DNA of 64,000 nucleotides, taken from contig NZ_JMCB01000006.1 of the NCBI RefSeq assembly GCF_000737315.1, forward strand, positions 496,001-560,000. The letters run 5' to 3'. Under the pieces are notes generated by a model, which was not told the origin of the DNA, did no database searches, and saw only the letters and a list, made by a program, of their open reading frames with translations. Made by a program: the position numbers and the translations under genes. Within the stretch, counting starts at the first letter, position 1. Each line of letters starts with the position of its first letter. This document shows, in pieces, positions 13,851-64,000 of the stretch. This DNA is from Hyalangium minutum (GTDB taxonomy: Bacteria > Myxococcota > Myxococcia > Myxococcales > Myxococcaceae).

Positions 13851-14241
13851 GCTTCCTTGCCCGACCCTAAAGGTACGGTTGACGGCCTAAGACGTATGGA
13901 GGCAGACGGACAGAACTTGCCGGGTAGATCTGCGCGTCTTCACCTGGCAGGTCGCGAATCTCGACAGGATGCCGCACTGCGGCGTCAGCGCCCCACTCAA
14001 GACCCCCCAGGTCGTCCCCAGGACCCCCGAGGCGTGTCCGCTCACTTTGGAAACACGGTCTTCCAGCCCAGAGAGGTCCCCCTGCGGAATCTGACCTGGG
14101 AGGTCCCTAGCGCCATGCATGGAAAAGCCGGTTCACCGGGGAACTTACGGGGCCAAATTGGATCAATTCCGCGTGAAATACCCATGGAAAGAGGGCAGCC
14201 GAGCCCCCACTTGGGGCCAGAGTGCCCTAGGCTGGGGGTTG

Positions 14242-47057: not shown

Positions 47058-47310
47058 TTCAGAAATCCCCCCTAAGGGGCGGCTCATCTTGCTTGACGGA
47101 TGGCTCGTTCCGGAAGCCACCCTTCCCGAAAAGACAGGGATGCAGGCTTGGCACCCACCCGGGCCGACATGACGCGCAAGAAGGCTTGCGCCTCCTCGTC
47201 TGCCGGGCTGACGGGTGTCGCTTGACCCAACTTGTCGTACATGGCTTTTTCAGAGACGTTCGACCGCGCCCCTCCGAGTGGGGGGTCCGCCCTCCGAGGC
47301 TTCTTCAGCC

Positions 47311-50211
47311 ATGTCTCCGGCCACACCTGCGTCCAGTCCCAGCGAGCGCCTCTCCCGGCAGATCATCGATGGCCTCAAAGAGGGCGTCTTCCAGACGGAT
47401 CCGCAAGGGCGCTGGACGTTCCTCAACCCCGCCTGGTCCGAGCTGACGGGCTTCTCCGTCGCGGAGAGCCTGGGGCGCGACGCGCTCGAGTCCGTTCACC
47501 CCGAGGACCGGACGCGGGTCCAGGAATCGTTCCAGGCGCTGCTCGCGCACAAAGCGGATCACTCCCGCCACGAGCTGCGCTACCTGCGGCGCGACGGGAG
47601 CACGCTCTGGGTGGAGATGGTCACCCGGCCGCTGCAGGGCGAGGACGGCGGCCTGCAGGGGCTGTGCGGCACCCTCACGGACGTGAGCACGCGGCGGCGC
47701 ACGGAAGAGGCCATGGCCCGCCGCGAGCGCTACCTGAGCGCGCTGGTGGAGATGCAGCAGCGGCTGCTGATGGCCCAGCAGGAGGGAGACCTCTACAAGG
47801 ACGTGCTGGAGCCCATCGGCCGGGCCGCGGGCGCCAGCCGCGTCTACTTCTTCGAGGTGTTCCGGGGCGAGGCGGGGCAGCAGCTCATGAGCCAGCGCGC
47901 CGAGTGGTGCGCTCCCGGCATCAAGCCCGTCTCCGGCAACCCGCGCTACCAGCCGGTGGTGGTGGACCGGGACTTCAAGCGCTGGGGCGAGCTGCTGTCG
48001 CGCGGCGAGGTGGTGGCGGGGCGGGTGAAGGACTTCCCCGTCACCGAGCGGGCCATCCTGGAGCCGCAGGGCATCCGCTCCATGCTGGTGCTGCCGCTGC
48101 GCATCAACAATTCGTGGGTGGGCTTCATCGGCTTCGACCACTGCGAGTCAGAGCAGGAGTGGGACAAGCTGGAGGTGGATCTGCTCTCGGCGGCGGCGGG
48201 CGCGCTCTCGCTGGAGCTGGAGCACCGCCGGTCGGAGAGCGCCCTGCGCGAGCGCGAGACGCGCTACCGGCAGCTGGCCGAGAACGCCTCGGACGTGCAG
48301 TACCGCTACAAGCTGGAGCCCCCGCGCGCCTTCCTCTACATCAGCCGCGTGGTGGGAGACCGGCTGGGCTACAGCCCCGAGGAGCACTACGCCAACCCCG
48401 AGCTGTGGCGGCAGCTGGTGCACCCCGGTGACTTGCCCGCGCTCGGACAGCTGCTGGAGGCGCCGCACCAGCTGGGCTCCAAGCCGGTGGTGCTGCGCTT
48501 CACGGGGCGCAACGGGCGGACGCGGTGGCTGGAGCACACGGTGGCCCCCGTGCTGGACACCACCGGCCGGCCCGTGGTCGTCGAAGGCATCGCCCGCGAC
48601 ATCACCGAGCGGCGTGAAGTCGAAGAGCAGCTCAAGATGTCCGAGGCCAGCTTCCGCATCCTCCTGGAGGGCGTGGCGGACGCGGCGGCCATCCAGCGGG
48701 ACGGGCGCATCGTCTACGCGAACATGGCCCTGGTGTCCGCGCTGGGGTTCGACCGGCCGGATCAGCTCGTGGGCCGCACACTGGCGCAGTTCATCGAGGA
48801 CGACATGGAGGAGGTGCCTGGCCCGCCTCCGGACCCCAGCGGCATCAAGGGGATGATCACCGGCGAGCGGCGCCTGGTGCGGCGCGACGGCAAGACGCGC
48901 GTGGCGGAGCTCGTGTCGCTGCCGCTGCTCTTCGACGGCGCGCCCGCGGTGGTGTCCATCGCACGGGACGTGACGGACCAGCGCCAGTTCCAGGCCCGGC
49001 TGACGCTGGCGGACAAGCTGGCCTCGGTGGGCACGCTGGCGGCGGGCATCGCCCATGAAATCAACAACCCGCTGGCCTTCGTCATCTCCAACCTGAGCTT
49101 CCTGTCCGAGGAGATGCGGCGCAGCCAGCTCGCGCTGGAGACGAGCGGCACGGGCGGTGTCCTCGCTCCGGCGCTGGCGCGGCCGCGCGGCATGGGAGGC
49201 GGGCTGGACCTGGTGGAGTGGCAGGAGGTGCTCAGCGAGGCCTATGAGGGCGCCGAGCGCGTGCGGCAGATCGTCCGCCAGCTCCGGGCCTTCTCCCGCC
49301 CGGACGAGGAGCGCCTGACGCCGGTGGATGTGCACCAGGTGCTCGAATCTGTGGTGATGATGGCCACCAACGAGATCCGCCACCGCGCCCAGCTGCACAA
49401 GGACTTCGGGCCGGTGCCCTCGGTCATGGCCAACGAGGGCCGGCTGTCCCAGGTCTTCCTCCACCTCGTGGTGAACGCCGCGCACGCCATCCCCGAGGGC
49501 CAGGCGCACCAGAACGCCATCCGCCTCATCACCCGGCGGCTCGACCCAGGGCGCGTGCTCATCGAGGTGCAGGACACGGGCAGGGGCATTGCCCCCGAGC
49601 ACCTCTCGCGCATCTTCGATCCGTTCTTCACCACCAAGCCGGTGAACGTGGGCACGGGCCTGGGCCTCTCCATCTGCCACAGCACCATCACCAGCATGGG
49701 CGGAGAGATTTCCGTCGACAGCGATCTGGGCAAGGGCACCACGTTCCGCGTGGTGCTGCCGTCCCTGGAGCCTCGCACGCGGCTGCGGCCCACGGGCCAG
49801 CCGACGATTGCCCCGCTCACCCACCGCCGCGGGCGCGTGCTCGTGGTGGACGACGAGCCCGGCGTGGGCAAGGTGCTGCGCCGCATCCTCAAGGAGCACG
49901 AGGTGGAAGTGGCCGCGGGCGGACGCCAGGCGCTCGAGCGGCTGCAGCAGGAGCCAGACAGCTTCGACGCCGTGCTGTGCGACGTGATGATGCCGGACCT
50001 CGGAGGCAAGGACCTCTACGAGGCCGTGCGCCGCACGCATTCCGGGCTGGAGCGGCGCTTCATCTTCGTGTCCGGCGGCGCCTTCACCGCCAACGCTCGT
50101 GAGTTCCTGGAGACCATCCCCAACCCCAAGCTCGAGAAGCCCTTCAACGAGCCGGCGCTGCGGCAGATCGTCCAGGAGCTGGTGAGCCGGGGACCCTCCT
50201 CGACGCGGTAG
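47311..50211 (+). CDS. Hybrid histidine kinase (PAS-GAF-PAS-PAS-HisKA-HATPase-REC)
   Basis: Three PAS domains, GAF, IAHEINNPL, FFTTK, GTGLGL and a receiver with LCDVMMP. Start uncertain (47215-47311). Confidence 0.92.
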   Translation: MSPATPASSPSERLSRQIIDGLKEGVFQTDPQGRWTFLNPAWSELTGFSVAESLGRDALESVHPEDRTRVQESFQALLAHKADHSRHELRYLRRDGSTLWVEMVTRPLQGEDGGLQGLCGTLTDVSTRRRTEEAMARRERYLSALVEMQQRLLMAQQEGDLYKDVLEPIGRAAGASRVYFFEVFRGEAGQQLMSQRAEWCAPGIKPVSGNPRYQPVVVDRDFKRWGELLSRGEVVAGRVKDFPVTERAILEPQGIRSMLVLPLRINNSWVGFIGFDHCESEQEWDKLEVDLLSAAAGALSLELEHRRSESALRERETRYRQLAENASDVQYRYKLEPPRAFLYISRVVGDRLGYSPEEHYANPELWRQLVHPGDLPALGQLLEAPHQLGSKPVVLRFTGRNGRTRWLEHTVAPVLDTTGRPVVVEGIARDITERREVEEQLKMSEASFRILLEGVADAAAIQRDGRIVYANMALVSALGFDRPDQLVGRTLAQFIEDDMEEVPGPPPDPSGIKGMITGERRLVRRDGKTRVAELVSLPLLFDGAPAVVSIARDVTDQRQFQARLTLADKLASVGTLAAGIAHEINNPLAFVISNLSFLSEEMRRSQLALETSGTGGVLAPALARPRGMGGGLDLVEWQEVLSEAYEGAERVRQIVRQLRAFSRPDEERLTPVDVHQVLESVVMMATNEIRHRAQLHKDFGPVPSVMANEGRLSQVFLHLVVNAAHAIPEGQAHQNAIRLITRRLDPGRVLIEVQDTGRGIAPEHLSRIFDPFFTTKPVNVGTGLGLSICHSTITSMGGEISVDSDLGKGTTFRVVLPSLEPRTRLRPTGQPTIAPLTHRRGRVLVVDDEPGVGKVLRRILKEHEVEVAAGGRQALERLQQEPDSFDAVLCDVMMPDLGGKDLYEAVRRTHSGLERRFIFVSGGAFTANAREFLETIPNPKLEKPFNEPALRQIVQELVSRGPSSTR

Positions 50212-53331: not shown

Positions 53332-53937
53332 CTACTTCTTGGTGCCGTCCGCCGGAGCCGGGGTGCCCGCCGGAGCCGCCGCCGGCGGCGTGGGCTCAGG
53401 AATCTTGTTCTTCAGGGCGGGCGTCGCCTGCAGGTAGGCGAAGACGGCCTTGAGGTCCTCGTCCGTCATCGCGGCAGCGTTCTGCCAAGGCATCGGCGGG
53501 AGGATGGGACGGCCCTGGCCCATGTGCTTGCCCGTCCGCATGGCCTGGACGAACTGCTTCTCCGTCCAGCTGCCAATCCCCGTCTCCTTGTCCGAGGTGA
53601 TGTTGGCCGCATAGCTCACCCCCCACGGCCCGGCCATCGCGGTGTTGGTGGCCAGGAAGGAGACGATCCACGGCCCCGAGGGGGCCGGCGGGGGCGGCAG
53701 CTGCATGCCCTCGGGGTGGCCCGAGAGCATCTTCGTCATGTCCGGGGCAGGCCCCTGAGGGCCCATGGCCAGCGGCGTGTGACAATCGTGGCAGCCCGCG
53801 ATACGGACCAGATATTCACCACGCTGGGCCTGCTTGCTCATCTTGGGCTTGGCGGGCGTCTTGCCCTGTGCCACAGCGACGAGGGGAACAGCGACGGCCA
53901 CCGCAGACGCCATCAACAGCACACGGCTCGGCTTCAT
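53332..53937 (-). CDS. Monoheme cytochrome c
   Basis: Signal peptide, GEYLV..AGCHDCHTP, ANITSD.ETGIG and Met ligand PMPW. Confidence 0.88.
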   Translation of the reverse strand: MKPSRVLLMASAVAVAVPLVAVAQGKTPAKPKMSKQAQRGEYLVRIAGCHDCHTPLAMGPQGPAPDMTKMLSGHPEGMQLPPPPAPSGPWIVSFLATNTAMAGPWGVSYAANITSDKETGIGSWTEKQFVQAMRTGKHMGQGRPILPPMPWQNAAAMTDEDLKAVFAYLQATPALKNKIPEPTPPAAAPAGTPAPADGTKK

Positions 53938-53956
53938 TGCCACTCCTATGAATGAC

Positions 53957-55096
53957 TTAGGGCTGAGTAGAGGTACTGCCAGACAGCACGGGGGCACTCC
54001 CTGGCCCCAGGCTCTCTGCGGCCCAGCGAGATAGCAGGGCCATTGCCTGGCCGTCTACCACTACGGTGCCCAACGGTGGCATTTGCGTCGCAGCCTGACG
54101 CGACCCCATCCTCAGCAGCGCCCCGCTGTGCTCCGGGCGCCCAGGCTCCAGGCGGAAGCGTGCATCCGGCGGCAGCCCCGCGGGACGGGCCCGCAGGGGA
54201 ATCCCCACGGCCGTGGCCACGGCCCGCTCGCTCCCCAGCGCCCCCTGCCCCACCACGTGCCGGAAGGCGAGCCCCAGGCCCTTGAGCATCCCCTCGTCAT
54301 TGTGGCAGTGCCCACAGTTGCCGTGCAGGTAGCCCAGCGCCGCGCGCTCGGTAGGCGTGCTCGCGGCGAGGCGTGGCGGCGTCTCTCGAAGCGCCCGAGG
54401 CAGGCGCTTGAGCAGGTTGTGCTCAACCAGATATTTCAGATCCACCCCAGGGGCGGGCACGGGCTCGGCGTGCAGAGCGTTCGGATCCCGATCCGTCGAC
54501 AGCTGGAGCGCGCTGAAGCCCAGCACCTCCGTGTCCTGCCCCTGGTGACACGCTTTGCAGTCATTGAGGCTGGGAACAGCATGCCAGCGGCCTTCCTCCA
54601 CCTCACAGGCCCCCGGAAGCCCCTGGCTCGGCACGAGCACGGCTTCGCTCTCGTCCGCCTGCCATGCGTACGAGGCATACAGCCACGTCCCATCCGCCTG
54701 GCGCTCCATGTAGCGTGTCTCCACGCGCCGGCCATGGAAGGAGAACTCTTTCCAGAATTTCGTGCCTACAGGGAAAACCCAGGCATTCGGCCGGGAGCCG
54801 TCGATGGCCTTCCCCGGCGGCAGGGAAACCCAGCGGCGCTTGAGTGCCCCGTCCGTCCAGAGGGGGTATTGGGGCGAGTACTCGAGGACTCGCGAGGCAA
54901 CCCCGTGCTGGCGGATGTCCCCATAAAGCCCCGTCCCACTCAGGGTGGGGGGCGGAGCCCGCGGCCCTACCGGCGCCTTCGCGAGGGCCAGCCCCCCCCC
55001 GAGCACCCCCACCACCACGAGCCAGCCGAGCCACGCCCAGAAACCGGGGCGCCCGCCAGAGTCCCTTGCTTCATGCCGTTGAGCCGCGCTCACCAT
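53957..55096 (-). CDS. Diheme c-type cytochrome (SO2930-like)
   Basis: TM anchor, YSPQYPLWTDGALKRRW...FPVGTKFWKEF and two CxxCH motifs (CKACH, CGHCH). Start uncertain. Confidence 0.78.
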   Translation of the reverse strand: MVSAAQRHEARDSGGRPGFWAWLGWLVVVGVLGGGLALAKAPVGPRAPPPTLSGTGLYGDIRQHGVASRVLEYSPQYPLWTDGALKRRWVSLPPGKAIDGSRPNAWVFPVGTKFWKEFSFHGRRVETRYMERQADGTWLYASYAWQADESEAVLVPSQGLPGACEVEEGRWHAVPSLNDCKACHQGQDTEVLGFSALQLSTDRDPNALHAEPVPAPGVDLKYLVEHNLLKRLPRALRETPPRLAASTPTERAALGYLHGNCGHCHNDEGMLKGLGLAFRHVVGQGALGSERAVATAVGIPLRARPAGLPPDARFRLEPGRPEHSGALLRMGSRQAATQMPPLGTVVVDGQAMALLSRWAAESLGPGSAPVLSGSTSTQP

Positions 55097-55257
55097 ACGA
55101 GCCCCGGAGTGTGCCAGCAGTCCGCCCCGTTGGCACGCGACAGGCCCCCGGCCCCCGTCTCCCCCCCGTTTTCCGAGAACTGTCGTCATCGGGTTGAGAA
55201 GCGGACCAAACCCAGGGAGAATGATTCTGTCCCCTACCTGACAAGGAAGCTTTATCC

Positions 55258-55947
55258 ATGTCCACCCCTTCCACGCCCCCCCGCTATGACTTCTACAGTC
55301 CCATCCACAAGGGCCTGCGTCGCACGATGTCCCGGCTGCTGGAACGGATGGGCTCAGCCAACTTCGCGGATGCCGCGCAGAGCAGCGCCATTCTTGGTGA
55401 GCTGCGCGTCCTGCTCGAGGCCTGTAGCCACCACATCAAGCACGAGAACACCTTCATTCACCCCACGATCGAGGAGCGGCTGAAGGGAGCCTCGAGCAAG
55501 ACCGCCCAGGAGCACGAGGGGCACCGCAAGGAGCTGGCCGAGCTGCAGCATCAGGCGGACGCCCTGCAGCAGGCGCCGGAGCAAGCCCGGCCCGCCCTGG
55601 CGCACACGCTGTATCTGTCCTTCAGCCGCTTCGTCGGCGAGAACCTGGCCCACATGGCCGAGGAGGAGCAGGAGCTGATGGGCAAGCTCCACGCCCACTT
55701 CTCCGACGCGGAGCTGATGGCCATGGAGGGGAAGATCCTCTCCACCATCGCCCCGGATCTGATGATGACCTTCATGACCATGATGATCCCGGCCATGAAC
55801 CGGGACGAGCGGGCCGCCGTGCTCGGTGGCATGAAGCAGGCGGCGCCCCCGGAGGCCTTCAACGCCGTTCTCCAGGTGGCCGCGCGGCCGAACCTCGACA
55901 CCGCGGACTGGCAGGACCTCACCCGCAAGCTGGGTGTCTCTGCCTGA
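55258..55947 (+). CDS. Hemerythrin-domain protein
   Basis: Di-iron ligand pattern HKGL, HHIKHENTF, EHEGH and HMAEEE. Confidence 0.9.
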   Translation: MSTPSTPPRYDFYSPIHKGLRRTMSRLLERMGSANFADAAQSSAILGELRVLLEACSHHIKHENTFIHPTIEERLKGASSKTAQEHEGHRKELAELQHQADALQQAPEQARPALAHTLYLSFSRFVGENLAHMAEEEQELMGKLHAHFSDAELMAMEGKILSTIAPDLMMTFMTMMIPAMNRDERAAVLGGMKQAAPPEAFNAVLQVAARPNLDTADWQDLTRKLGVSA

Positions 55948-56043
55948 AGCCCTGCCGAACCCCAGCCGCTCCGGCTGGGGCATCTTCCCTCTCAAGTTCC
56001 TAGTCTAGTAAGGACTTGGCCCTCACTCCTTGGCTGCCACGAA

Positions 56044-58038
56044 ATGCTACAGATGATGAATCCTGCTTCCCTGTTCTCCCGGGCGCCCGCTCACGCAGCG
56101 CCTGTGTCCCTCTCGGTGTGGCCGCGCCTGCTCGCCTGCGCGCTGCTGCTGCCAGCCCTGGCCTGCAACCTCTTGGACGTCTCCAGCACGGAGAACCTCG
56201 CCGACGGCCGTGGCGCGCGCGTCTTCGACCCGTACCAGTCGTCCAACTCGGGCGCCATTCGCCTGTCCCTGCAGTGGTACAACGGCTGCGCGGTGATCCC
56301 CACGGGCCAAGTCGTGCCGAAGAACTCCGCGGACATCGACTACCCCGCGGACTACCCGGACGACTGCCCCAGCTCCATCGCCATTGATGGCGTCCCGCCG
56401 TACGCGCCCCCGGGGAAGATCACCCTGGTCACCAACACCAACTACTTCTTCAACCAGTTCACGGTGACCGACACCCGCGTCAACCTGCACACCAACTCCA
56501 AGGCTCTGTCGGAGCCGCTGAACTGGATCACCAAGGAGTCGCGCTTCAAGAGCCTGGACTGGTCCGGCGTGGGCCTGGTGAACGACGACTGGGTCTACCA
56601 AGTGGGAGTGCCTGGCGTGAGCCAGGACCGGTGGCACCGCATCGTCAACTTCGAGAACGCCGCCTGGCGCAGGGCCACGGGAGACACCTTCAAGGTGGAG
56701 ATCCTCGACTCGGAGGGCACGGTGCGTGGCACTCCCGTCGAGTACTCGCGCGCGGAGTTCCTCGTGAGCACGCCGTACGCCGGGCACTCGCACTTCGGCT
56801 GGCGCATGGAGAATGTCCTGCCTCCGCGCTTCCCGGGAGACTTGGAGACGCACGCGCTGCCGGAGATCCCCGGCTATCCCCCCCAGGCCCCGGTGTTCCG
56901 CACCACCGCCCGTCTGGACATCGTGGGCAGCACCAACCCCTTCAAGACGTTCCGCGTGCCGGATCTGCAAGGCGAGGGCGCCGTGCGGGTGACGTGGAGC
57001 CAGATGCCCAACGAGCCGTTCTACTTCCCGGTGACGTTCGTGGCCCCGCAGGATCTGCCGGTCACCTGCTTCGCCGAGGACGGGACCACCAGCGCCCAGT
57101 GCGGCTTCGGCGTTGATCCCAACCTGCGCATCGTCGCGCCGACCAACGGCAAGTACTTCGAGCCGGGCGAGGTGATGAACCTCTTCATCGACGTGCGGGA
57201 CACCAACGGCAAGCGGCTGCACACGCCGGACATGCTGCCCAGCGGCGTCGCGGCGGTGAGCAACCAGAGCAACGGCCTGCTCTACCCGAGCCTGCCCTAC
57301 ATCGAGCGCACCCTCGAGCTGGACATGATCCCCATCGTCAACATCGCGGGGCCGATCCACAAGCTGATCAACCGCAGCAACCCGAAGGAGCCGGCGCAGT
57401 ATTTCACGAATGGGTACTCGTACTCGACGCCCAGCGAGACGGCGACCACGCCGCTGAACTCCGCGGAGTTCGGCCAGGAGTGGGCCACGCGCGTCGGCAC
57501 GCAGCTGCCCCCCAACGCCGAGCCCGGCACGTACGTGGCACTCATCAAGTTCAACCGCTACTTCGGCGGCGAGCGCCTGGCGAAGATCAAGCCCTACTTC
57601 TTCCAGGTGGGCACGGAGAAGCGCACCACCTATCCGGGCAAGATTGGCAACTGCCAGATCTGCCACCGCGGCGTGCTCTCGCTGGACAACCTGCGCCACG
57701 GCCTGGCGGTGGACCACGTGGAGGCCTGCAAGTCGTGCCACCAGTACGAGACGTCCAACGGCGGCACGGTGATGGAGAACCTGCACAAGATTCACATGCG
57801 CTCGCCGAAGTTCCCGGGGTCCAAGTCTGACTGCACCGTGTGCCACCTGACGAGGGACAGCGCCACCCGCCCCAGCCTCTATGCGTGCGGCACGTGCCAC
57901 CCTTCGGCGCACAACGCCGAGTACTTCGCGGCCCAGTTCCTCACCGGCACCGAGCCGAGCCGCTACGGCAACTGCGCCCAGCAGTGCCATGGCAATTCTG
58001 ACACCTTGCCCAAGAGCCACTTCCTCCCCGCTGAGTGA
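56044..58038 (+). CDS. Multiheme (pentaheme) cytochrome c lipoprotein, MtrC/OmcA-like C-terminal domain
   Basis: Lipobox LPALAC; CQICH, CKSCH, CTVCH, CGTCH and CAQQCH all lie in the last ~130 aa, with LHKIH. Confidence 0.8.
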   Translation: MLQMMNPASLFSRAPAHAAPVSLSVWPRLLACALLLPALACNLLDVSSTENLADGRGARVFDPYQSSNSGAIRLSLQWYNGCAVIPTGQVVPKNSADIDYPADYPDDCPSSIAIDGVPPYAPPGKITLVTNTNYFFNQFTVTDTRVNLHTNSKALSEPLNWITKESRFKSLDWSGVGLVNDDWVYQVGVPGVSQDRWHRIVNFENAAWRRATGDTFKVEILDSEGTVRGTPVEYSRAEFLVSTPYAGHSHFGWRMENVLPPRFPGDLETHALPEIPGYPPQAPVFRTTARLDIVGSTNPFKTFRVPDLQGEGAVRVTWSQMPNEPFYFPVTFVAPQDLPVTCFAEDGTTSAQCGFGVDPNLRIVAPTNGKYFEPGEVMNLFIDVRDTNGKRLHTPDMLPSGVAAVSNQSNGLLYPSLPYIERTLELDMIPIVNIAGPIHKLINRSNPKEPAQYFTNGYSYSTPSETATTPLNSAEFGQEWATRVGTQLPPNAEPGTYVALIKFNRYFGGERLAKIKPYFFQVGTEKRTTYPGKIGNCQICHRGVLSLDNLRHGLAVDHVEACKSCHQYETSNGGTVMENLHKIHMRSPKFPGSKSDCTVCHLTRDSATRPSLYACGTCHPSAHNAEYFAAQFLTGTEPSRYGNCAQQCHGNSDTLPKSHFLPAE

Positions 58039-58052
58039 GAGATTCCAACACC

Positions 58053-59135
58053 ATGAATCGCCATGTCCGTTCCGCCCTCCTCCTGGGCGCCAGCCTGCTG
58101 GGAGCCGGCTGTGAGCAGTCCACCAACCCGGGGACCTCTTCCTTCGTCCCCGAGATCCAGTACGTGTCGCCCGAGAGCGTCACCCTCACCACCCGCGTCT
58201 CCGGGGTGGCGTGGGATCCCGAGGCGTTCTTCATGAGCCTGGCCACGTGCGGCCCCACCTGCCCCATTCCGCCCTTCATTTCCGAGGGCATGCCGCTGTA
58301 TCAGCGCTCGGCGATCCGCGGCGGCTCCGTCTCCGCGCTGGACCCCACCAACGGGGCGACGGTGGGTGACCCGTCCAGCACGGACGGGGTGGGCATCTGG
58401 GTGCTCCCCAAGGTGCCCAGCCGCAACACCGCGCCTTACTTCATCGTCTCGGCGAGCCAGGGCGCGCTTCCCACCGAGCAGATCGGCCCGCCGCTGCCGG
58501 CCATTCCCCCCACCCAGTACCTGAAGACGCTCACGCTGCGCCCCATCAAGACGGTGAGCGGCTCGTGCGTCTCCATGGAGGCGGTGCACGTGGGCTCCAC
58601 GGGCGTGCTGCAGGCGGTCGCCAAGCAGCTGTCGTCCCAGGGCAAGCCCACCGTCGTCTCGGATCTGCTGGACCCCACCCAGTACCACTCGGTGACCGTG
58701 GTCGGCATGTTCCACGCGGGCAACGCGGCGCTCCGGGCCCCCGCGGCGGGGACCGGCTTGTCCGCCACCTCGACGACGGGCAGCGGCGCGCCGGTCTCCT
58801 ACCCGGTGTACCACATCGACTGGGCGCCGCCGGGGACGCCCCCGAGCAACCTGCGCTCGGATCGCGGCTTCATCGTCTCCGCGACAGACAAGTCGCCGGT
58901 GGGCTTCGCCGTGGTGCTCGTCCCCGCGACCCTGCCGCGTCCGGCGGCGATCACCTACACGGTGACCGACCCGGTGGAGGACGCCGTGGCGCGCCGGCCC
59001 TGGGTTTACATGCCCATCACGGCCCCGCCTACGCCGGGGATTGTCACCTTCCTGGGCATCCAGATGGGCTACCAGCCGCCGTCCATCCCGCTGTTCCAGT
59101 TGCCTCCGCCGCCGGGCGCCTGCGTCCCGCTGTAG
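58053..59135 (+). CDS. Hypothetical Pro-rich, beta-rich lipoprotein
   Basis: Lipobox LGAGC; co-oriented 14 nt after the multiheme gene. Confidence 0.75.
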   Translation: MNRHVRSALLLGASLLGAGCEQSTNPGTSSFVPEIQYVSPESVTLTTRVSGVAWDPEAFFMSLATCGPTCPIPPFISEGMPLYQRSAIRGGSVSALDPTNGATVGDPSSTDGVGIWVLPKVPSRNTAPYFIVSASQGALPTEQIGPPLPAIPPTQYLKTLTLRPIKTVSGSCVSMEAVHVGSTGVLQAVAKQLSSQGKPTVVSDLLDPTQYHSVTVVGMFHAGNAALRAPAAGTGLSATSTTGSGAPVSYPVYHIDWAPPGTPPSNLRSDRGFIVSATDKSPVGFAVVLVPATLPRPAAITYTVTDPVEDAVARRPWVYMPITAPPTPGIVTFLGIQMGYQPPSIPLFQLPPPPGACVPL

Positions 59136-59189: not shown

Positions 59190-60356
59190 ATGGACATGGC
59201 TTCCCACTTCGATGAGCCGCTGGCGCGCGGCACCAGTGACAGCTTCAAGTGGCGCAAGTACCCGGCGGACGTCCTGCCCATGTGGGTGGCGGACATGGAC
59301 TTCCGCTCGCCCGAGCCGGTCCTCCAAGCCCTGCATGAGCGCATCTCGCATGGGGTCTTCGGCTATCCGCTGGAGCCCCTGCCCGAGCTCATCGAGAGCG
59401 TCACCGGCTATCTGCTCGAGCACCACGGCTGGCGGGTGCCGCCCGAGGCCATTGTCCTGCTGCCCGGCCTCATCCCCGGCTTCAACGTCGCCTGCCGGGC
59501 CGTCGCGCAGCCGGGAGACGGCGTCCTGCTCCACGTCCCCGCCTACCCGCCGCTGCTGCAGTGTCCGCTGAACATGGGGCTGCGCCGGGACGAGGTGCGG
59601 ATGGTGCGCGGCGCCAGCGGCCAGTACGAGGTGGACTGGGACTCCTTCCAGCAGGCGCTGCATCCCCGCTCGCGGGTGATGTTGCTGTGCAACCCCCACA
59701 ACCCCCTGGGGCGCGTGTTCACGCGGGAGGAGCTCACCCGCATGGCGGAGGCCTGCCTGCGCCAGGAGCTGATCATCGTCTCGGACGAGATTCACTGTGA
59801 CTTGGTGTTCCGAGGCCACCGGCACACGTGCATGGCCATGCTCAGCCCGGAGGTGGAGGCGCGCACCATCACCCTCATGTCCCCGAGCAAGACGTTCAAT
59901 TTGGCGGGGCTGAAGATGGCGTTCGCAGTCATTCCGGACGCACAGCTGCGCCAGCGCTTCCTTGCGGCGAGGGCGGACATGCTGCCCTCGCCCAACATCC
60001 TCGGAGGGGTGGCGATGCAGGCCGCCTACCGCCAAGGCCAGCCGTGGCTGCGCGAGCTGCGGGAGTACCTGGAGGCCCAGCGCGGCTTCCTGGTGGACTT
60101 CGTGAGCCGGCACCTGCCCGGAGTCCGCATGGTGGCCCCCGAGGGGACCTACCTGGCCTGGCTGGACTGCCGCGAGGCGGGGCTCCCCGGCAACGCCACC
60201 ACCTTCTTCCTGGAGCAGGCGCGGGTGGCGCTCAGCCCTGGAGAGAGCTTTGGCCCGGGCGGCGAGGGCTGCGTCCGGCTCAACTTCGGCTGCACGCGGG
60301 CGCACCTGAGCGAGGGCCTGGAGCGCATGCGCCAGGCGATGGCGCGCATGCGCTGA
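59190..60356 (+). CDS. PLP-dependent C-S lyase, MalY/PatB family
   Basis: PMWVADMDF, CNPHNPLG, SDEIH and the PLP lysine in SPSKTFNLAG. Confidence 0.93.
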   Translation: MDMASHFDEPLARGTSDSFKWRKYPADVLPMWVADMDFRSPEPVLQALHERISHGVFGYPLEPLPELIESVTGYLLEHHGWRVPPEAIVLLPGLIPGFNVACRAVAQPGDGVLLHVPAYPPLLQCPLNMGLRRDEVRMVRGASGQYEVDWDSFQQALHPRSRVMLLCNPHNPLGRVFTREELTRMAEACLRQELIIVSDEIHCDLVFRGHRHTCMAMLSPEVEARTITLMSPSKTFNLAGLKMAFAVIPDAQLRQRFLAARADMLPSPNILGGVAMQAAYRQGQPWLRELREYLEAQRGFLVDFVSRHLPGVRMVAPEGTYLAWLDCREAGLPGNATTFFLEQARVALSPGESFGPGGEGCVRLNFGCTRAHLSEGLERMRQAMARMR

Positions 60357-60368
60357 ACCGGGTGCGCC

Positions 60369-61034
60369 TCAGCGGCCCGCCTTGGGCGTCAGCAGCCAGG
60401 CGCTCTTGGCCGTTGAAATCCGCTGCGTGGGCGGCCCTACCACCTCCTCGCCCTGTCCCACCTGCTCGAGCTGGAACCGCTCCCCCCAGAGGCGGTGGAC
60501 CTCTTCGGAAGGAATGGAGAAGGGTGGGCCCGGGAAGGTGTTCGATTGGTAGGCCACGGTGAGCAACAGGCCGCTCGTGCTGGGGGCCAGCATCTCGCGC
60601 TGGAAGTGCTCGGCGTAGCGCTCGCGCATCGCCGGCGGCAGCGCGATCAACGACGCCCGGTCATAGAAAGCAGCCAGGGGCCCCGTCTGCCGGGCGCTCA
60701 ACTGGAAGAAGTCCCCCTCGTAGAGGGTGATGGGCTGGTGCTTGGCGCGATGGACGCGGAAGGGGCCCTCGGTGACCGGCGTGGCGGCCTCGATGCGGTT
60801 CTCGGAGAAGAAGGCCTCACAGGCGATCGGGCTGAGCTCGACCCCCACCACCTGGTAGCCCTGAGACACCAGCCACAGCATATCCAGCGACTTGCCGCAC
60901 AGGGGCACGAAGACCGTCGCGCCCCGGGCGAGCCCGAGCCGCTCAAAGTGCGCGCCGAGGAACTTCTCGACCTCGGGTTGGTGGAAGGCGATCTGCCCCT
61001 GCTGCCAGCGCTCGTGCCAGAACTGACTCTCCAT
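60369..61034 (-). CDS. Thiopurine/thiol S-methyltransferase (TPMT family)
   Basis: FWHERWQQGQIAFHQ, FVPLCGKSLDM, GVELS, YDRASLIALP and GPPFS. True start MESQF at 61034. Confidence 0.92.
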   Translation of the reverse strand: MESQFWHERWQQGQIAFHQPEVEKFLGAHFERLGLARGATVFVPLCGKSLDMLWLVSQGYQVVGVELSPIACEAFFSENRIEAATPVTEGPFRVHRAKHQPITLYEGDFFQLSARQTGPLAAFYDRASLIALPPAMRERYAEHFQREMLAPSTSGLLLTVAYQSNTFPGPPFSIPSEEVHRLWGERFQLEQVGQGEEVVGPPTQRISTAKSAWLLTPKAGR

Positions 61035-61069
61035 GCCGTCGTGTCTCCCGTGCCGCCGCGCCTGGCGCC

Positions 61070-62263
61070 TCAGCGAATAAGGTAGCTGTGCGTCTCGTCG
61101 CGGTGCTTCTTGAGGTAGTGCGTGAAGGGGGTACCGCCCGTGCCTTGATCGTGAGAGCCACCCTGGGCGGTGGCATGCTCGCGGGCGGGCTGAATGATGT
61201 AGCGGGCCGTCATCTCCATGTGCTTCTGGCGGAAGCTGCCCAGCAGCTCCAGGCAGCCATTGTAGGCCTCCACGAGCTCGGGCGGGCGGCGCGCGAGCAG
61301 GTAGTCCCGGACCGAGGGCCCGCGCTCCACGGACTCGAGGAAGGCCAGATGCGCGGGGGGCATGTAGCGGCGCAGCTCCAGCAGGTACTGGTGCATCGTG
61401 TCCTGCGAGTGCCTCACCCCCAGCACCGCGTCGAGCAGCGGCAGCAGCACGCTCTGCGCGGCGCTGGCTCCCGCGAACGGCTGCGGCTGATCCCCGAACT
61501 CCTGGACGCCCTCGTACCGCACCGGCAGCTGGAGGAAGCCGTGGAGGAAGGGTTGGATGCGGCTGAAGAAGATGGAGGGCTCGCACCGCTCCGTCATGCG
61601 CATCAGCACGCGCTCCACCTCCTGCTGGGCGCTGGCGATGCGCCGCAGCTGCTGCAGCAGCTGCTCGGGCCTGTCCGCCACCACCGCCTCCTGAGCGGCG
61701 GCCGCGGCTGGAACCAAGGGCGCGCCCCGGGCCTCGAGCTCCACGTGCACGAGGATGAACCAGGACTCGTCCAGCCCGCCCAGGAAAGCCTGCTGCAGCA
61801 GCAGGTTGCCCAGGGCAATGGGGCCCTCGGCATCCACCCGCCTCCAGTTGTTCAGCGCGTGCGAGCTGTAGGAGAGCACCGGTGGACGCCCCAGCCGCCG
61901 GGCCACCTGCACCCAGGGTACCGCCACGCTGCGGGGGAAGCTCAGCTGCGGCTGTTGCCGCCCCTTCTCCCAGACGGCCGCGTGCCCGAAGAAGGACAGC
62001 AGCATCATGGCCCGCTCCAGGTGGCGCGGCTCCTGGAGCAACCCCACCTCCAACACGGGCAGCTGCTCCATGCGCTCACGGGCCCTGCCGGCGGCCAGCA
62101 GCCCCGGGAGCTCCCGGCCCAGCTCATCCCACGGCGCGAAGGCCGTGGGCAGCCTCAGGCACGGGTCCTCCTCGGGAAGAAAGCCCCGCTGGAGGTGAGC
62201 GGACGAAGCGGCGGCGAAGCCCTCCGCTCCCACCGCCTGCGCCTCGTTCATGCGTGTCTCCAC
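61070..62263 (-). CDS. Indoleamine 2,3-dioxygenase-family heme enzyme
   Basis: GASAAQS (compare IDO GGSAGQS), FRQKHM...YI (Arg plus proximal His) and the C-terminal GTGGT loop. Start at 62263 or 62251. Confidence 0.92.
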   Translation of the reverse strand: METRMNEAQAVGAEGFAAASSAHLQRGFLPEEDPCLRLPTAFAPWDELGRELPGLLAAGRARERMEQLPVLEVGLLQEPRHLERAMMLLSFFGHAAVWEKGRQQPQLSFPRSVAVPWVQVARRLGRPPVLSYSSHALNNWRRVDAEGPIALGNLLLQQAFLGGLDESWFILVHVELEARGAPLVPAAAAAQEAVVADRPEQLLQQLRRIASAQQEVERVLMRMTERCEPSIFFSRIQPFLHGFLQLPVRYEGVQEFGDQPQPFAGASAAQSVLLPLLDAVLGVRHSQDTMHQYLLELRRYMPPAHLAFLESVERGPSVRDYLLARRPPELVEAYNGCLELLGSFRQKHMEMTARYIIQPAREHATAQGGSHDQGTGGTPFTHYLKKHRDETHSYLIR

Positions 62264-62327
62264 GGTGTACTCCCTCGGGGCACCTTGGCGGGCTTGCGCC
62301 CCGGTGCCCAGCCCAGCTCATCCCCTG

Positions 62328-63152
62328 TCACGGCTGCTGAAAACGGCCCAGTGTCTCCTGCAGCCTGCGCACTTCCTCAGGCGCCAGTCGACAGTGTCTG
62401 CGCTCGATGAAGCTCTTGAGCTCGTTACATCCGTCCTGCCCGAACCGCCGCAGATACGTCTCCAAGAATCCCAGGTCCTCATAGAGAAAGGCCACATCCG
62501 GCCGGACCATGGTGCGAATCACCAGCAGCGGCGGCGAGGAGCGCAGCGGATGCCAGGCCGGGTTGCGCAGGCCCGTCTTCGCGCAGGCCGGGTAGAACTC
62601 GCCCAGCATCAGCCCTTCCTTCACGAAGGCGGGCTTGAGCCGCTCGTGCAGGGCCTTCATGAACTCCGCCTCCTGCTCGCCGGGCATGCCCGTGAAGATC
62701 GTCACGATGGCCTTGAACTGCCCCAGGCTGTGCTCCACCGGCTCCTTCTCCAGGAAGTACCGGCGCATCACGTGAAACGCCTGCTCCACCTCGTCCACGC
62801 GCAGGTGCGGCTGATCCATCACCGTCAGGTGATACAGCCGGCGCTGGATGGATTTCTCGACCCAGGGGCACACCGGCCCCGGCCGCCCCAGCTCCGCGTG
62901 AGGCCGCGTCAGGTAATCACGAGACCAGCGCGCGACCGCCCGGAGATAGCTCATCTCCTCCTCGCTGGCCCCCTCCAGCCGCGAACCTTCCTCCAGGTTC
63001 AGCACATCCAGCGCCTGATACATCGCGGGAAGCGGTAGCGCGGGCGTCTCTTCACCCTGCGCTGTGATCAGGTTGAGCCTTTCGGCTCTCTTGCTGGCTC
63101 CTACCTTGGAAACGCCAGGGATTCTCAGCGAGGGCTCGGAGGGGGGAAGCAT
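62328..63152 (-). CDS. DUF6875-like protein
   Basis: PHAELGRPGPVCPWV, GLMLGEFY and LRSSPPLLVIRTMV..D..FL. SD GAGG precedes the ATG at 63152. Family identified from recall. Confidence 0.7.
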   Translation of the reverse strand: MLPPSEPSLRIPGVSKVGASKRAERLNLITAQGEETPALPLPAMYQALDVLNLEEGSRLEGASEEEMSYLRAVARWSRDYLTRPHAELGRPGPVCPWVEKSIQRRLYHLTVMDQPHLRVDEVEQAFHVMRRYFLEKEPVEHSLGQFKAIVTIFTGMPGEQEAEFMKALHERLKPAFVKEGLMLGEFYPACAKTGLRNPAWHPLRSSPPLLVIRTMVRPDVAFLYEDLGFLETYLRRFGQDGCNELKSFIERRHCRLAPEEVRRLQETLGRFQQP

Positions 63153-63180
63153 CAAAAGCACCTCACAACGATGAGGGGGT

Positions 63181-63207
63181 AAGAAATCAGTGAAAACCTG
63201 ATTTCTT
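63181..63207. promoter_or_regulatory. Perfect 10-bp inverted repeat in a divergent AT-rich promoter region
   Basis: AAGAAATCAG-TGAAAAC-CTGATTTCTT. Confidence 0.7.
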
Positions 63208-63379
63208 CTCGTTGTCTAATTGTCTGGAACAATTTTACTCTCAAAAAAGCCGGTAGAAAAGCGAACAACACGTATCAATTTCGCGGCGGTGGAATGCGCA
63301 CATCCAGCGACTGATACCGACGGGCCAGCGGGGGGTGGCACCTTGGTGGCGCTCGCGAGGCAGGACTACACTGCGTCCC

Positions 63380-64000
63380 ATGCGCGTCCTCTACCTCTCT
63401 CAGATCATGTCGCATGATCATCCGCGCCGCGCCGCGTTGCCGGACGAGCGGAAGATGATCGCTCCTTTGTTTCAGGAGCTGGAAACCCAGGTCCACGTGG
63501 TGGATGCCACCTGCGAGCCCCTGCCGGATCCGCGCGAGTATGCCGGCGTGCTGGTGGGCGGCAGCGCGGGCTCGGCCAATGACACCGAGCCGTGGCGGCT
63601 GCGGCTGCGCGAGTGGATGGGCACCTGGCAGCAGGTGCCGCTGTTGGGTATCTGCGGCGGCCACCAGCTGCTGGCCCACGCGCTGGGCGCGCGCGTGCAG
63701 AAGATGGCCCGGGTGCAGGTAGGAGTGCACCCGCTCCAGCTGCCGGACATCCCCGGGTTCTCGGGCTGGGTGATGCACATGCACAGCGAGCACGTGGTGG
63801 ATGTGCCTCCCGGAGCCACCGTCTGGGCGGAGGACGTGGCGGGAATCCAGGCCCTGCGCTTCCCCGGACACCGGTGGACGGTGCAGTTTCACCCGGAGAT
63901 GCCCGAAGAGGTGGCCTACAGCTCGGGCCGCAGCATGGGCGCCACCGCCGAGAGCTGGCCACAGCGCGAGGTGCGCGCCGCCGTCTCGGATGGCAAGGCC
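63380..64000 (+). CDS. Class I glutamine amidotransferase-like protein (gamma-glutamyl hydrolase type; 3' end outside the window)
   Basis: Not in the ORF track. Manual translation from the ATG at 63380 is open to the window end: MRVLYL...VGGSAGS...LGICGGHQLL (catalytic Cys)...QFHPE (His-Glu). Confidence 0.88.
   Translation, partial: MRVLYLSQIMSHDHPRRAALPDERKMIAPLFQELETQVHVVDATCEPLPDPREYAGVLVGGSAGSANDTEPWRLRLREWMGTWQQVPLLGICGGHQLLAHALGARVQKMARVQVGVHPLQLPDIPGFSGWVMHMHSEHVVDVPPGATVWAEDVAGIQALRFPGHRWTVQFHPEMPEEVAYSSGRSMGATAESWPQREVRAAVSDGKA

Follow-up and report, generated by a model that had tools for sequence, protein, structure and literature searches.

The window, a stretch of 64,000 nucleotides of Hyalangium minutum DNA, closes with five enzyme genes. 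On the plus strand, a PatB/MalY-family PLP-dependent cysteine-S-conjugate beta-lyase of 388 aa (59190..60356; TIGR04350, PF00155) is followed by three genes on the minus strand, encoding a TPMT-family SAM-dependent thiol S-methyltransferase of 221 aa (60369..61034; PF05724, TIGR03840), an indoleamine 2,3-dioxygenase (IDO) of 393 aa from the ATG at 62251 (61070..62251; PF01231), and a DUF6875 protein, or cytochrome P422, of 231 aa from the ATG at 63023 (62328..63023; PF21780). The longest open reading frame of the IDO gene starts with a GTG at 62263, and that of the DUF6875 gene reaches 63161. These three genes run in one direction, separated by 76 and 35 nt, and the TPMT gene, which ends the run, converges on the C-S lyase gene, the two stop codons lying 12 nt apart. 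On the other side, the DUF6875 gene diverges across 356 nt (63024..63379) from a stand-alone class I GATase-like hydrolase on the plus strand (63380..64000, the window end; PF00117). The latter measures 217 aa in full; its last 10 codons and stop lie beyond the window, and the gene would end at 64033. No sigma-70-like site was found in the 356-nt intergenic region, a scan that is uninformative for myxobacteria.

A sequence-only reading of this DNA had placed the same five genes in the same orientations, and both points hold, with all five genes present at family scores far above chance. The five genes do not form the whole unit, however. The block extends approximately 5.5 kb past position 64000, and this additional sequence, which the sequence-only reading had proposed to examine, encodes a Ser-type glutathione S-transferase (GST), an S51 peptidase and a luciferase-like monooxygenase (LLM). 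The GST and the second hydrolase (S51) had both been missing from the glutathione route suggested earlier. The core thus comprises eight genes (GST, S51, LLM, GATase, DUF6875, IDO, TPMT and C-S lyase), and H. minutum, alone among five occurrences, carries a CmlS-like halogenase and a DUF6081 protein inside the block, making ten. The gene content of the cluster in H. minutum and its relatives includes no kynurenine formamidase, kynureninase, ferredoxin, ferredoxin reductase, flavin reductase, regulator or transporter.

Conservation of the eight-gene block

H. minutum, H. rubrum, one MAG and two metagenome contigs (n=5) share the eight genes in one conserved order, which bears out the co-occurrence anticipated from the window. 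All five occurrences are close relatives, so conservation is weaker as evidence than at first sight, and the synteny could be largely inherited from shared ancestry. The block is absent from the other P422 (DUF6875) loci compared (0 of ~95 with any partner gene). In H. rubrum both of its flanks differ, in the MAG one of them, and the H. minutum block has undergone an internal insertion and an inversion with all eight genes retained. Only H. minutum has the divergent layout; the GATase gene of each remaining cluster (n=4) lies upstream of the P422 gene in the same direction. The stretch from S51 to TPMT, six genes long, is co-directional throughout in four loci, with five of the six genes 17–60 nt from their neighbours and a gap of ~190–270 nt (from called starts) upstream of the P422 gene.

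These features bear on whether the genes belong together at all. They could be unrelated housekeeping genes, with IDO serving tryptophan catabolism, PatB cysteine and methionine metabolism, TPMT selenium and tellurium methylation, and GST the stress response, adjacent through close kinship only. Such roles are common for all four families, the TPMT scores barely above the equivalog cutoff of a Se/Te methyltransferase model, and a single lineage holds every occurrence. Nevertheless, the block is intact amid reshuffled flanks, has outlasted the insertion and inversion in H. minutum, shows tight spacing of five of six co-directional genes, and encodes functions that form one chemically coherent route. 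We consider fortuitous adjacency highly improbable.

Oxygenases and H. minutum-specific genes

The DUF6875 protein (PF21780, E=1e-54) belongs to a family introduced in December 2025 under the name “cytochrome P422,” whose thiolate-haem enzymes hydroxylate tryptophan at N1, C6 or C7 (bioRxiv 10.64898/2025.12.11.692455). The connection to tryptophan made in the sequence-only reading is strengthened accordingly, DUF6875 now being an experimentally characterised tryptophan hydroxylase family. The P422 motifs RxGxVCP, HxxxK, MxGxF and RxMx3Dx2F are all intact in the window protein and invariant. Its SBR2 motif is of the His type, whereas the N1-hydroxylase Mc170 has Gln at the carboxylate anchor. 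In a neighbour-joining tree, the protein belongs to the His-type branch, where its group is sister to a clade with two tested enzymes, those of Xenorhabdus koppenhoeferi and Pseudomonas cremoricolorata, which were shown to be tryptophan C6-hydroxylases. It is 31–45% identical to the proteins of other retrieved P422 loci. The sequence supports no confident prediction of regiochemistry. N1- and C7-hydroxylases occur inside the mostly-C6 clade (bioRxiv 10.64898/2025.12.11.692455). C7-hydroxylases of this family are often encoded beside a tryptophan 2,3-dioxygenase (TDO), which converts 7-hydroxytryptophan to 3-hydroxy-N-formylkynurenine (bioRxiv 10.64898/2025.12.11.692455).

N1-hydroxylases make up approximately half of the P422 enzymes characterised so far, and a route that retains the indole deserves mention. 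In such a route, N1-hydroxylation would be followed by GST-catalysed glutathione attack at C2, trimming, C-S lyase and TPMT action to give 2-(methylthio)tryptophan, with IDO and LLM acting before or after, for example by cleaving the 2-substituted indole. N1-hydroxylation makes C2 electrophilic to a thiol, and every tested N1-hydroxylase also closed the thieno-indole C-S bond of thienodolin when given a thiol substrate (bioRxiv 10.64898/2025.12.11.692455). The sulfur-processing genes would fit equally well. However, the window P422 has the anchor His rather than the Gln of Mc170 and sits in the branch with the tested C6-hydroxylases, the halogenase of H. minutum is of the phenol type, and the adjacent IDO would have no obvious role, while a P422 paired with a tryptophan dioxygenase has a described logic. 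On balance, an indole-retaining route seems unlikely.

The IDO (PF01231, E=4e-99) has IDO2 and IDO1 as its best solved relatives (E=6e-69), with the proximal His aligned; this residue, His344, is invariant among 14 bacterial IDOs. The protein is 80–86% identical across the other four loci. Myxobacterial relatives of 68–72% identity stand alone in unrelated contexts and are presumably ordinary enzymes. The LLM has a generic fold and represents a widespread subfamily that is likewise found in unrelated contexts. Three of the eight conserved genes thus encode oxygenases, two of which (P422 and IDO) come from tryptophan-acting families. Of the genes confined to H. minutum, the CmlS-like halogenase is of the phenol type rather than the tryptophan 5/6/7 type, with an intact GWFWYIP motif, and DUF6081 includes the quinone-tailoring proteins NcnN and ActVA-3.

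Sulfur-processing genes

Five of the eight conserved genes (GST, two hydrolases, PatB and TPMT) match one-to-one the five steps of the established route from a glutathione conjugate to a methyl thioether. The C-S lyase scores 438 bits against a cutoff of 340 for TIGR04350 (PF00155, E=1.9e-40) and has its PLP-lysine motif SPSK at residue 231; orthologues of 78–85% identity occupy the equivalent position in four related loci (L002, L004, L035 and L036). The methyltransferase (PF05724, E=2.9e-61) scores 229.6 bits against a cutoff of 223.2 for TIGR03840 and 223.8 against 213 for PRK13255, and its orthologues in all five clusters share 69–81% identity. TPMT-family enzymes favour aromatic and heterocyclic thiols. 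The GST is nearest to the plant phi class (maize GST III, 3e-27; AtGSTF9); its catalytic Ser lines up with the one in plant phi-class GSTs, including maize GST III, and the ES(N/R)AI motif is retained. The second hydrolase, beyond the window, is the S51 Ser peptidase.

The GATase (PF00117, E=1.7e-16) has only a weak match to Peptidase_C26 and scores 104.7 bits with PRK09065, under the cutoff. The catalytic triad reported earlier is indeed intact, with Cys in LLGICGGHQ and His-x-Glu in FHPE, and Cys-His-Glu is invariant in four orthologues. Profile matches to solved structures were led by the stand-alone GATase 9xfs (7e-11), followed by GMP synthase (1.5e-8) and Arabidopsis gamma-glutamyl peptidase 1 (8.9e-8). 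The protein is a candidate gamma-glutamyl peptidase. Alternatively, it may act as an amidotransferase or as the N-formylkynurenine formamidase that the cluster otherwise lacks, which would leave one hydrolase for glutathione trimming. The glutathione-conjugate and S-methylation route of the sequence-only reading is thus reinforced by the GST and S51 genes and less certain at the GATase, whose match to Arabidopsis GGP1 (structure 9k7i) is no better than that to GMP synthase.

The sulfur could also come from a donor other than glutathione. PatB might produce S-thiocysteine from cystine for addition by the GST-fold protein, with the GATase acting as amidotransferase or formamidase and S51 an unrelated peptidase. 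A bacterial precedent for a GST and PatB pair that does not use glutathione exists in the case of tropodithietic acid (TdaB/PatB), where PatB makes S-thiocysteine from cystine and a GST-fold protein adds it; moreover, the GATase is unassignable to the gamma-glutamyl peptidases and the cluster contains no formamidase. This proposal appears distinctly improbable, given that the GST retains the Ser and ES(N/R)AI features by which conjugating phi/delta/theta GSTs bind glutathione and that trimming of a glutathione conjugate needs two hydrolases, the number conserved here.

Possible pathway and comparison with known systems

We assign a probability of roughly 0.5 to the reading that this is a dedicated cluster, without NRPS or PKS, that would convert tryptophan to a methylthio-substituted aromatic metabolite with sulfur from glutathione. 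The general scheme, in which an oxidised tryptophan-derived electrophile acquires a glutathione-derived S-methyl group, stands at the same even odds, and its ring-opened, kynurenine-type version specifically is tentative. We infer each step from the enzyme family assignments. P422 would hydroxylate the benzene ring of L-Trp at C6 or C7, and IDO would cleave the C2–C3 bond to give an aminophenol-type hydroxy-N-formylkynurenine. The luciferase-like flavin monooxygenase, or autoxidation, could convert this to a quinone or quinone-imine electrophile, to which the Ser-type GST would add glutathione. The GATase-like Cys-His-Glu hydrolase and the S51 Ser peptidase would trim gamma-Glu and Gly, the PatB C-S lyase would convert the cysteine conjugate to an aryl thiol, and TPMT would S-methylate it. 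In H. minutum only, the CmlS-like flavin halogenase and DUF6081 may further chlorinate or oxidise the product. The “tryptophan S-methylthiolation” of the sequence-only reading survives in its link to tryptophan, which P422 supports, and the evidence leans toward a ring-opened hydroxykynurenine-type scaffold rather than an intact indole.

An identical enzyme set could serve catabolism or detoxification, with P422 and IDO starting hydroxytryptophan or kynurenine degradation and the remaining enzymes acting as a bacterial “thiomethyl shunt” for reactive aminophenol or quinone-imine by-products, or for an electrophile from outside, which would make the methylthio compound a waste product. In animals, the xenobiotic thiomethyl shunt runs through the same series, from GST through removal of the gamma-glutamyl and Gly residues to cysteine-conjugate beta-lyase and thiol methyltransferase. 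Genes for regulation, transport or resistance are absent from the cluster, and its IDO is close to stand-alone IDOs. Such modules are usually widespread, however, whereas this block is limited to one narrow lineage and absent at ~95 other P422 loci, and in H. minutum it contains a halogenase and a quinone-tailoring-type protein, typical of secondary-metabolite diversification. A disposal role consequently strikes us as an outside chance.

As a separate observation, H. minutum DSM 14724T, the strain from which the window comes, also makes hyaladione, an S-methyl quinone, whose link to the cluster is a lead only.

Among known systems, the actinomycin, mycemycin and tasikamide clusters pair a C7-hydroxylase P422 with TDO to produce 3-hydroxykynurenine and 3-hydroxyanthranilate (bioRxiv 10.64898/2025.12.11.692455). 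The Hyalangium block likewise places a P422 gene, with haem- and substrate-binding motifs all kept, beside a gene for a haem tryptophan 2,3-dioxygenase. However, its dioxygenase is an IDO rather than a TDO, no NRPS follows, and its partners are sulfur-processing enzymes, unmentioned in the neighbourhood analysis of the P422 paper. In thienodolin biosynthesis, the P422 ThnD/ThdM closes a C-S bond within a chlorinated tryptophan-derived thiol (bioRxiv 10.64898/2025.12.11.692455). The combination of P422, halogenase and sulfur chemistry on a tryptophan-derived substrate is shared, and ThnD also has a His-type SBR2. Yet thienodolin sulfur comes from the sulfur-carrier protein system ThnL/F/M, in place of which Hyalangium has GST, C-S lyase and TPMT; the thienodolin halogenase is a tryptophan 6-halogenase, and the thienodolin partner genes are all absent from the block.

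Fungal gliotoxin and related ETP pathways use the GST GliG, the gamma-glutamylcyclotransferase GliK, the dipeptidase GliJ and the PLP C-S lyase GliI, followed by S-methylation by GtmA (in part PMC9659040). The chemical logic, the number of steps and their joint encoding are alike: a GST acts on an oxidised amino-acid-derived electrophile, Glu and Gly are removed, and a PLP C-S lyase yields a thiol that is optionally S-methylated. The gliotoxin scaffold is an NRPS diketopiperazine, in contrast to the NRPS-free bacterial block, and its hydrolases are a gamma-glutamylcyclotransferase and an M19 dipeptidase rather than a GATase-like Cys hydrolase and an S51 Ser peptidase; the Hyalangium methyltransferase is of the TPMT family.

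The core of plant indole glucosinolate and camalexin synthesis consists of a phi-class GSTF, the gamma-glutamyl peptidases GGP1/GGP3 and the C-S lyase SUR1. It resembles the Hyalangium block in its tryptophan-derived substrate, a phi-class-like GST, and a stand-alone class I GATase-fold protein with a PLP C-S lyase. Plants, however, activate tryptophan by CYP79/CYP83 aldoxime chemistry rather than by P422 and IDO, have no known S-methylation step and are not known to cluster the genes in this way, and the Hyalangium GATase is only a candidate GGP1-like enzyme. The mammalian xenobiotic “thiomethyl shunt” (GST, gamma-glutamyltransferase, dipeptidase, cysteine-conjugate beta-lyase and thiol/thiopurine methyltransferase) has an identical reaction order, ending in TPMT-type methylation of an aromatic thiol, but it is dispersed detoxification metabolism rather than a gene cluster, and its trimming is carried out by other hydrolase families.

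Gene content and layout of the block

All five enzymes of a tryptophan S-methylthiolation-like cluster, which a sequence-only reading had proposed at 59190–64000, are present and assigned to their families by profile scores. A PatB-family PLP C-S lyase lies on the plus strand at 59190–60356 (TIGR04350, 438.1 bits against a cutoff of 340). On the minus strand are a TPMT-family methyltransferase of 221 aa (60369–61034; PF05724, E = 2.9e-61), which exceeds the TIGR03840 and PRK13255 cutoffs by narrow margins (229.6 vs 223.2 and 223.8 vs 213, respectively), an indoleamine 2,3-dioxygenase (IDO) homolog (61070–62251; PF01231, 332.5 bits, E = 4e-99), and a DUF6875 protein, or cytochrome P422 (62328–63023; PF21780, 185.7 bits against a gathering cutoff of 24.5, E = 1.1e-54). 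A class I glutamine-amidotransferase-like protein (GATase) begins on the plus strand at 63380 and is truncated by the window end (PF00117, 60.9 bits). The gene orientations described in the earlier reading are borne out: the DUF6875, IDO, and TPMT genes are co-directional, face the C-S lyase gene, and diverge from the GATase gene. The DUF6875 and IDO genes are separated by 76 nt and the IDO and TPMT genes by 35 nt, and the convergent TPMT and C-S lyase genes have stop codons 12 nt apart. The called starts of the DUF6875 and IDO genes are ATGs internal to the longest ORFs.

Reading beyond position 64000 yielded a glutathione S-transferase (GST) and a second peptidase, of family S51, both outside the window. 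In locus L001, the H. minutum locus on JMCB01000006.1 of assembly GCA_000737315.1 (window coordinate = 73024 − L001 coordinate), the genes outward from the GATase encode a DUF6081 protein, a flavin-dependent halogenase, a luciferase-like monooxygenase (LLM), and the S51 peptidase, followed by the divergent GST. The block lacks genes for a formamidase, a kynureninase, or a redox partner, and no NRPS or PKS domains were found among the ten largest ORFs scanned in the rest of the window. A sigma-70 promoter scan, which is not informative for a myxobacterium, found no site. Elsewhere the window is rich in signal transduction genes (9902–11950, 14119–15909, 42789–45317, and 47215–50211), including hybrid histidine kinases, a PAS/GAF kinase, and a Cache-domain chemoreceptor.

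Recurrence across related loci

The same set of genes, consisting of GST (−), S51, LLM, GATase, DUF6875, IDO, and TPMT (+), and C-S lyase (−), recurs in five loci: those of H. minutum and H. rubrum, one metagenome-assembled genome (MAG), and two metagenome contigs. Identity to the H. minutum protein is 76–78% for the GST, 81–87% for the S51 peptidase, 80–82% for the GATase, 61–70% for the P422, 80–86% for the IDO, 69–81% for the TPMT, 78–85% for the C-S lyase, and 60–61% for the LLM. H. rubrum has different flanking genes on both sides of the block, and the MAG does on its GST side, so the conserved unit extends from the GST through the C-S lyase. The halogenase and DUF6081 genes are found only in H. 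minutum, where the GATase gene is also inverted. The H. minutum LLM (L001 5136–6347, past the window end) adjoins this halogenase insertion and is 15 residues shorter than the other four LLMs; its low identity beside the insertion, compared with 76–87% for most neighboring genes, suggests accelerated divergence or replacement.

Among approximately 100 loci with a DUF6875 homolog, partner genes of any kind occur in these five alone, all of them from close relatives. The remaining homologs are 27–49% identical across the matched segment, and many lie on short contigs. Loci were scanned with an alignment of the close P422 clade, as broad P422 alignments were too diverse. Searches around relatives of the IDO and of the LLM recovered no further cluster: the IDO homologs (68–72% identical) stand alone in unrelated contexts, and the LLM homologs (~50% identical) are likewise in unrelated contexts. 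At two loci (L039 10001–21161 and L040 2890–14050), a stand-alone IDO that is 71% identical directly adjoins an extracellular contractile injection system, with genes for eCIS_core, sheath, tube, baseplate, and gpD.

Beside the cluster, several consecutive genes at window positions 53332–59135 probably encode secreted or lipoprotein heme proteins. These include a gene with four C-terminal CxxCH motifs and weak MtrC-like matches (56044–58038, plus strand), a hemerythrin (55258–55947), and minus-strand genes with two CxxCH motifs (53957–55189) and one (53332–53997). The recurrence comparison covered the three genes nearest the cluster (58035–59135, 56044–58038, and the hemerythrin). Three or four of the five clusters have these genes alongside, but H. 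rubrum has none of them there, so they are probably not part of the cluster.

Predicted tryptophan-oxidizing enzymes

The DUF6875 family has been renamed cytochrome P422, a group of Cys-ligated b-heme proteins whose reaction is hydroxylation of L-Trp at N1, C6, or C7 or, in the case of thienodolin biosynthesis, C-S bond formation (bioRxiv 10.64898/2025.12.11.692455). Genes for C7-hydroxylases often adjoin TDO, which converts 7-OH-Trp to 3-hydroxy-N-formylkynurenine and thereby bypasses kynurenine monooxygenase; the P422 neighborhoods described in the same preprint contain TDO, kynureninase, tryptophanase, PRAI, and IGPS, and no sulfur enzymes (bioRxiv 10.64898/2025.12.11.692455). The window protein has all of the defining motifs, namely GRPGPVCPW, VIRTMVRPDVAF (RTMVRPDVAF), HERLK, and MLGEF, as judged by the preprint's definitions RxGxVCP for the heme ligand and Rx(M/L)x3Dx2F, (Q/H)x3K, and MxGxF for the substrate. 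The key motif residues are invariant in 23 homologs. In the clade of the window protein, conservation does not extend to the Asp of 'Dx2(Q/H)'. No solved structure matches this P422 by sequence.

Two types are clearly separated among the 84 P422 homologs in loci L001–L101: His-type proteins have HxxxK, GEFY/GEFF, and CPW/CPY/CPF, and Gln-type proteins have DxxQxxxK, CPF, and mostly GEFH. Loci from Xenorhabdus koppenhoeferi and Pseudomonas cremoricolorata encode His-type proteins, and P422 proteins of these species are tested C6-hydroxylases (bioRxiv 10.64898/2025.12.11.692455). The Gln type agrees with Mc170, a crystallized N1-hydroxylase that uses Gln (bioRxiv 10.64898/2025.12.11.692455). In a neighbor-joining tree, the Hyalangium P422 clade groups with Polyangiaceae, Dormiibacterota, and O-methyltransferase-linked homologs, and the C6-hydroxylase clade is the sister of this group. 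Because of its His-type motif and its position near the C6-hydroxylases, hydroxylation of the benzene ring (C6 or C7) is favored over N1 for the window protein, though without certainty. The His/Gln distinction could offer a simple way to predict P422 regiochemistry from sequence.

Two other P422 contexts were encountered among the homologs. A 408-aa protein encoded outside the window (P0016) consists of a GGDEF domain (PF00990) fused to a P422 domain sharing 41% identity with the window protein, and could be a heme- or tryptophan-sensing c-di-GMP synthase. At L037 3623–8386 and L038 3592–8355 (GCA_016307145.1), the genes flanking a 42% identical P422 encode two PF00891 O-methyltransferases, a Cucumopine_C protein, an Amidohydro_2 protein, and another methyltransferase; this is a separate, uncharacterized cluster, predicted to be Trp-derived.

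The alignment of the IDO with IDO2 and IDO1, its best solved relatives (6e-69), spans the full length of the protein and includes the proximal heme His. This residue, His344, is invariant in a comparison of bacterial IDOs. The equivalent of IDO1 Arg231 is Gln in the window protein. A cluster-specific adaptation is ruled out as the origin of this substitution, since the stand-alone myxobacterial IDOs share the Gln.

The predicted structure of the LLM is confident (pLDDT 87) and matches only generic TIM barrels (luciferase-like, SsuD, SfnG, and RslO1; TM ~0.6, 13–18% identity), and therefore gives no indication of function. As with the P422, no solved structure matches the LLM by sequence.

Candidate sulfur-handling enzymes, proposed route, and possible product

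The GST contains GST_N and GST_C domains (PF02798, PF00043), and its best structural matches are plant phi, insect delta, and theta class enzymes. Its Ser9 aligns to the catalytic Ser of maize GST III, with ESNAI opposite ESRAI. The S51 peptidase (PF03575, 149.6 bits) aligns with the alpha-aspartyl dipeptidase 7c9b at GMSAG/GSSAG and PHY/PHY, retaining the Ser nucleophile and the His, and is a candidate for trimming a glutathione conjugate at the Cys-Gly or gamma-Glu bond. The C-S lyase carries its PLP-binding Lys in SPSK (residues 231–234).

The Cys-His-Glu triad of the GATase is intact, as noted in the sequence-only reading, and invariant in four orthologs; GICGGHQ contains the Cys and FHPE the His-x-Glu. 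Its profile matches in the PDB are the stand-alone GATase 9xfs (7e-11), GMP synthase (1.5e-8), and Arabidopsis gamma-glutamyl peptidase 1, GGP1 (8.9e-8), and its match to Peptidase_C26 covers just 26 residues. Neither single-sequence nor profile searches place it with the GGP1-type peptidases, and its role could instead be that of a formamidase or an amidotransferase. No synthetase partner is encoded nearby, which favors a hydrolase role. With the GATase as a putative gamma-glutamyl peptidase, candidates for a GST, a Glu-remover, a Gly-remover, and a PLP C-S lyase stand together in one block in all five loci; we infer a division of Glu and Gly removal between the GATase and the S51 enzyme.

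Five of the conserved genes may fit, one to one, the steps from a glutathione conjugate to a methyl thioether. The other three encode predicted oxygenases, and two of these belong to Trp-specific families. In the proposed route, the P422 would hydroxylate Trp and the IDO would convert hydroxy-Trp to hydroxy-N-formylkynurenine, from which the LLM or autoxidation would generate a quinone or quinone-imine. The GST would join glutathione to this electrophile, the GATase-like and S51 hydrolases would trim gamma-Glu and Gly from the conjugate, the C-S lyase would convert the cysteine conjugate to an aryl thiol, and the TPMT would yield the S-methyl product. This scheme, leading from Trp through a ring-opened intermediate to an S-methyl compound, is the most economical reading, each chemical step being one that we infer from gene families. 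The sulfur pathway first suggested for the five genes is strengthened by the GST, the second peptidase, the conservation of the block, and the P422 literature; as to the scaffold, we now lean toward a ring-opened one.

The type strain of H. minutum, NOCB-2T, produces hyaladione, a cytotoxic and antimicrobial S-methyl cyclohexadiene-dione of the quinone class (PMC10800785, PMC8401837, PMC10959286). The accession JMCB00000000 belongs to H. minutum DSM 14724T (PMC5441343); since NOCB-2T is the type strain, the sequenced organism is the hyaladione producer. Several features of the block fit a small S-methyl quinone: the S-methyltransferase and C-S lyase, the halogenase restricted to H. minutum among the five loci, and the DUF6081 protein, whose family takes in the quinone-tailoring NcnN and ActVA-3 (PMC10697411). 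The halogenase has GGGPAG at residue 12 (FAD motif GxGxxG) and GWFWYIP at residue 220 (WxWxIP motif), scores 211.9 bits against PF04820, and has CmlS as its nearest model (288 bits, under the equivalog cutoff); it is predicted to be CmlS-like and of the phenol type. No publication linking H. minutum to a halogenase was found. We consider it unlikely, at roughly one chance in five, that the block is the hyaladione gene cluster in H. minutum. If it were, a benzoquinone antibiotic would be carved from tryptophan via P422/IDO ring opening, its methylthio group would come from a bacterial glutathione/peptidase/C-S lyase/TPMT cassette, the halogenase and DUF6081 pair would represent a strain-specific tailoring step found only in H. 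minutum, and a complete, clustered sulfur route resembling those of gliotoxin and glucosinolates would exist in bacteria without an NRPS or PKS. The block is a testable candidate locus for this orphan bioactive myxobacterial metabolite.

The cluster, of which a literature search found no published description, would place P422 in a context that is neither NRPS-linked nor one of plain kynurenine supply, and would hand a bacterial IDO a role in secondary metabolism. As the sequence-only reading also suggested, it may well be overlooked by rule-based gene cluster finders, given that it has no NRPS, PKS, terpene, or RiPP core. The candidate aryl-thiol-forming lyase and aryl-thiol methyltransferase could also be of use in biocatalytic C-S chemistry. 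Fungi and plants offer well-documented cases of glutathione-derived sulfur installation by a GST, trimming, and a PLP C-S lyase; in bacteria, a compact and conserved cluster encoding this whole route together with an S-methyltransferase would be unusual. The proposed route shares its logic with the GSTF/GGP1/SUR1 core of plants and the thiomethyl shunt of animals. The same holds for gliotoxin biosynthesis, in which bis-glutathione adducts are processed to cysteine conjugates before the GliI lyase frees the dithiol (PMC9659040). The Hyalangium cluster differs from these systems in its hydrolase families, in its putative Trp-oxidizing front end, and in its bacterial, NRPS-free setting.
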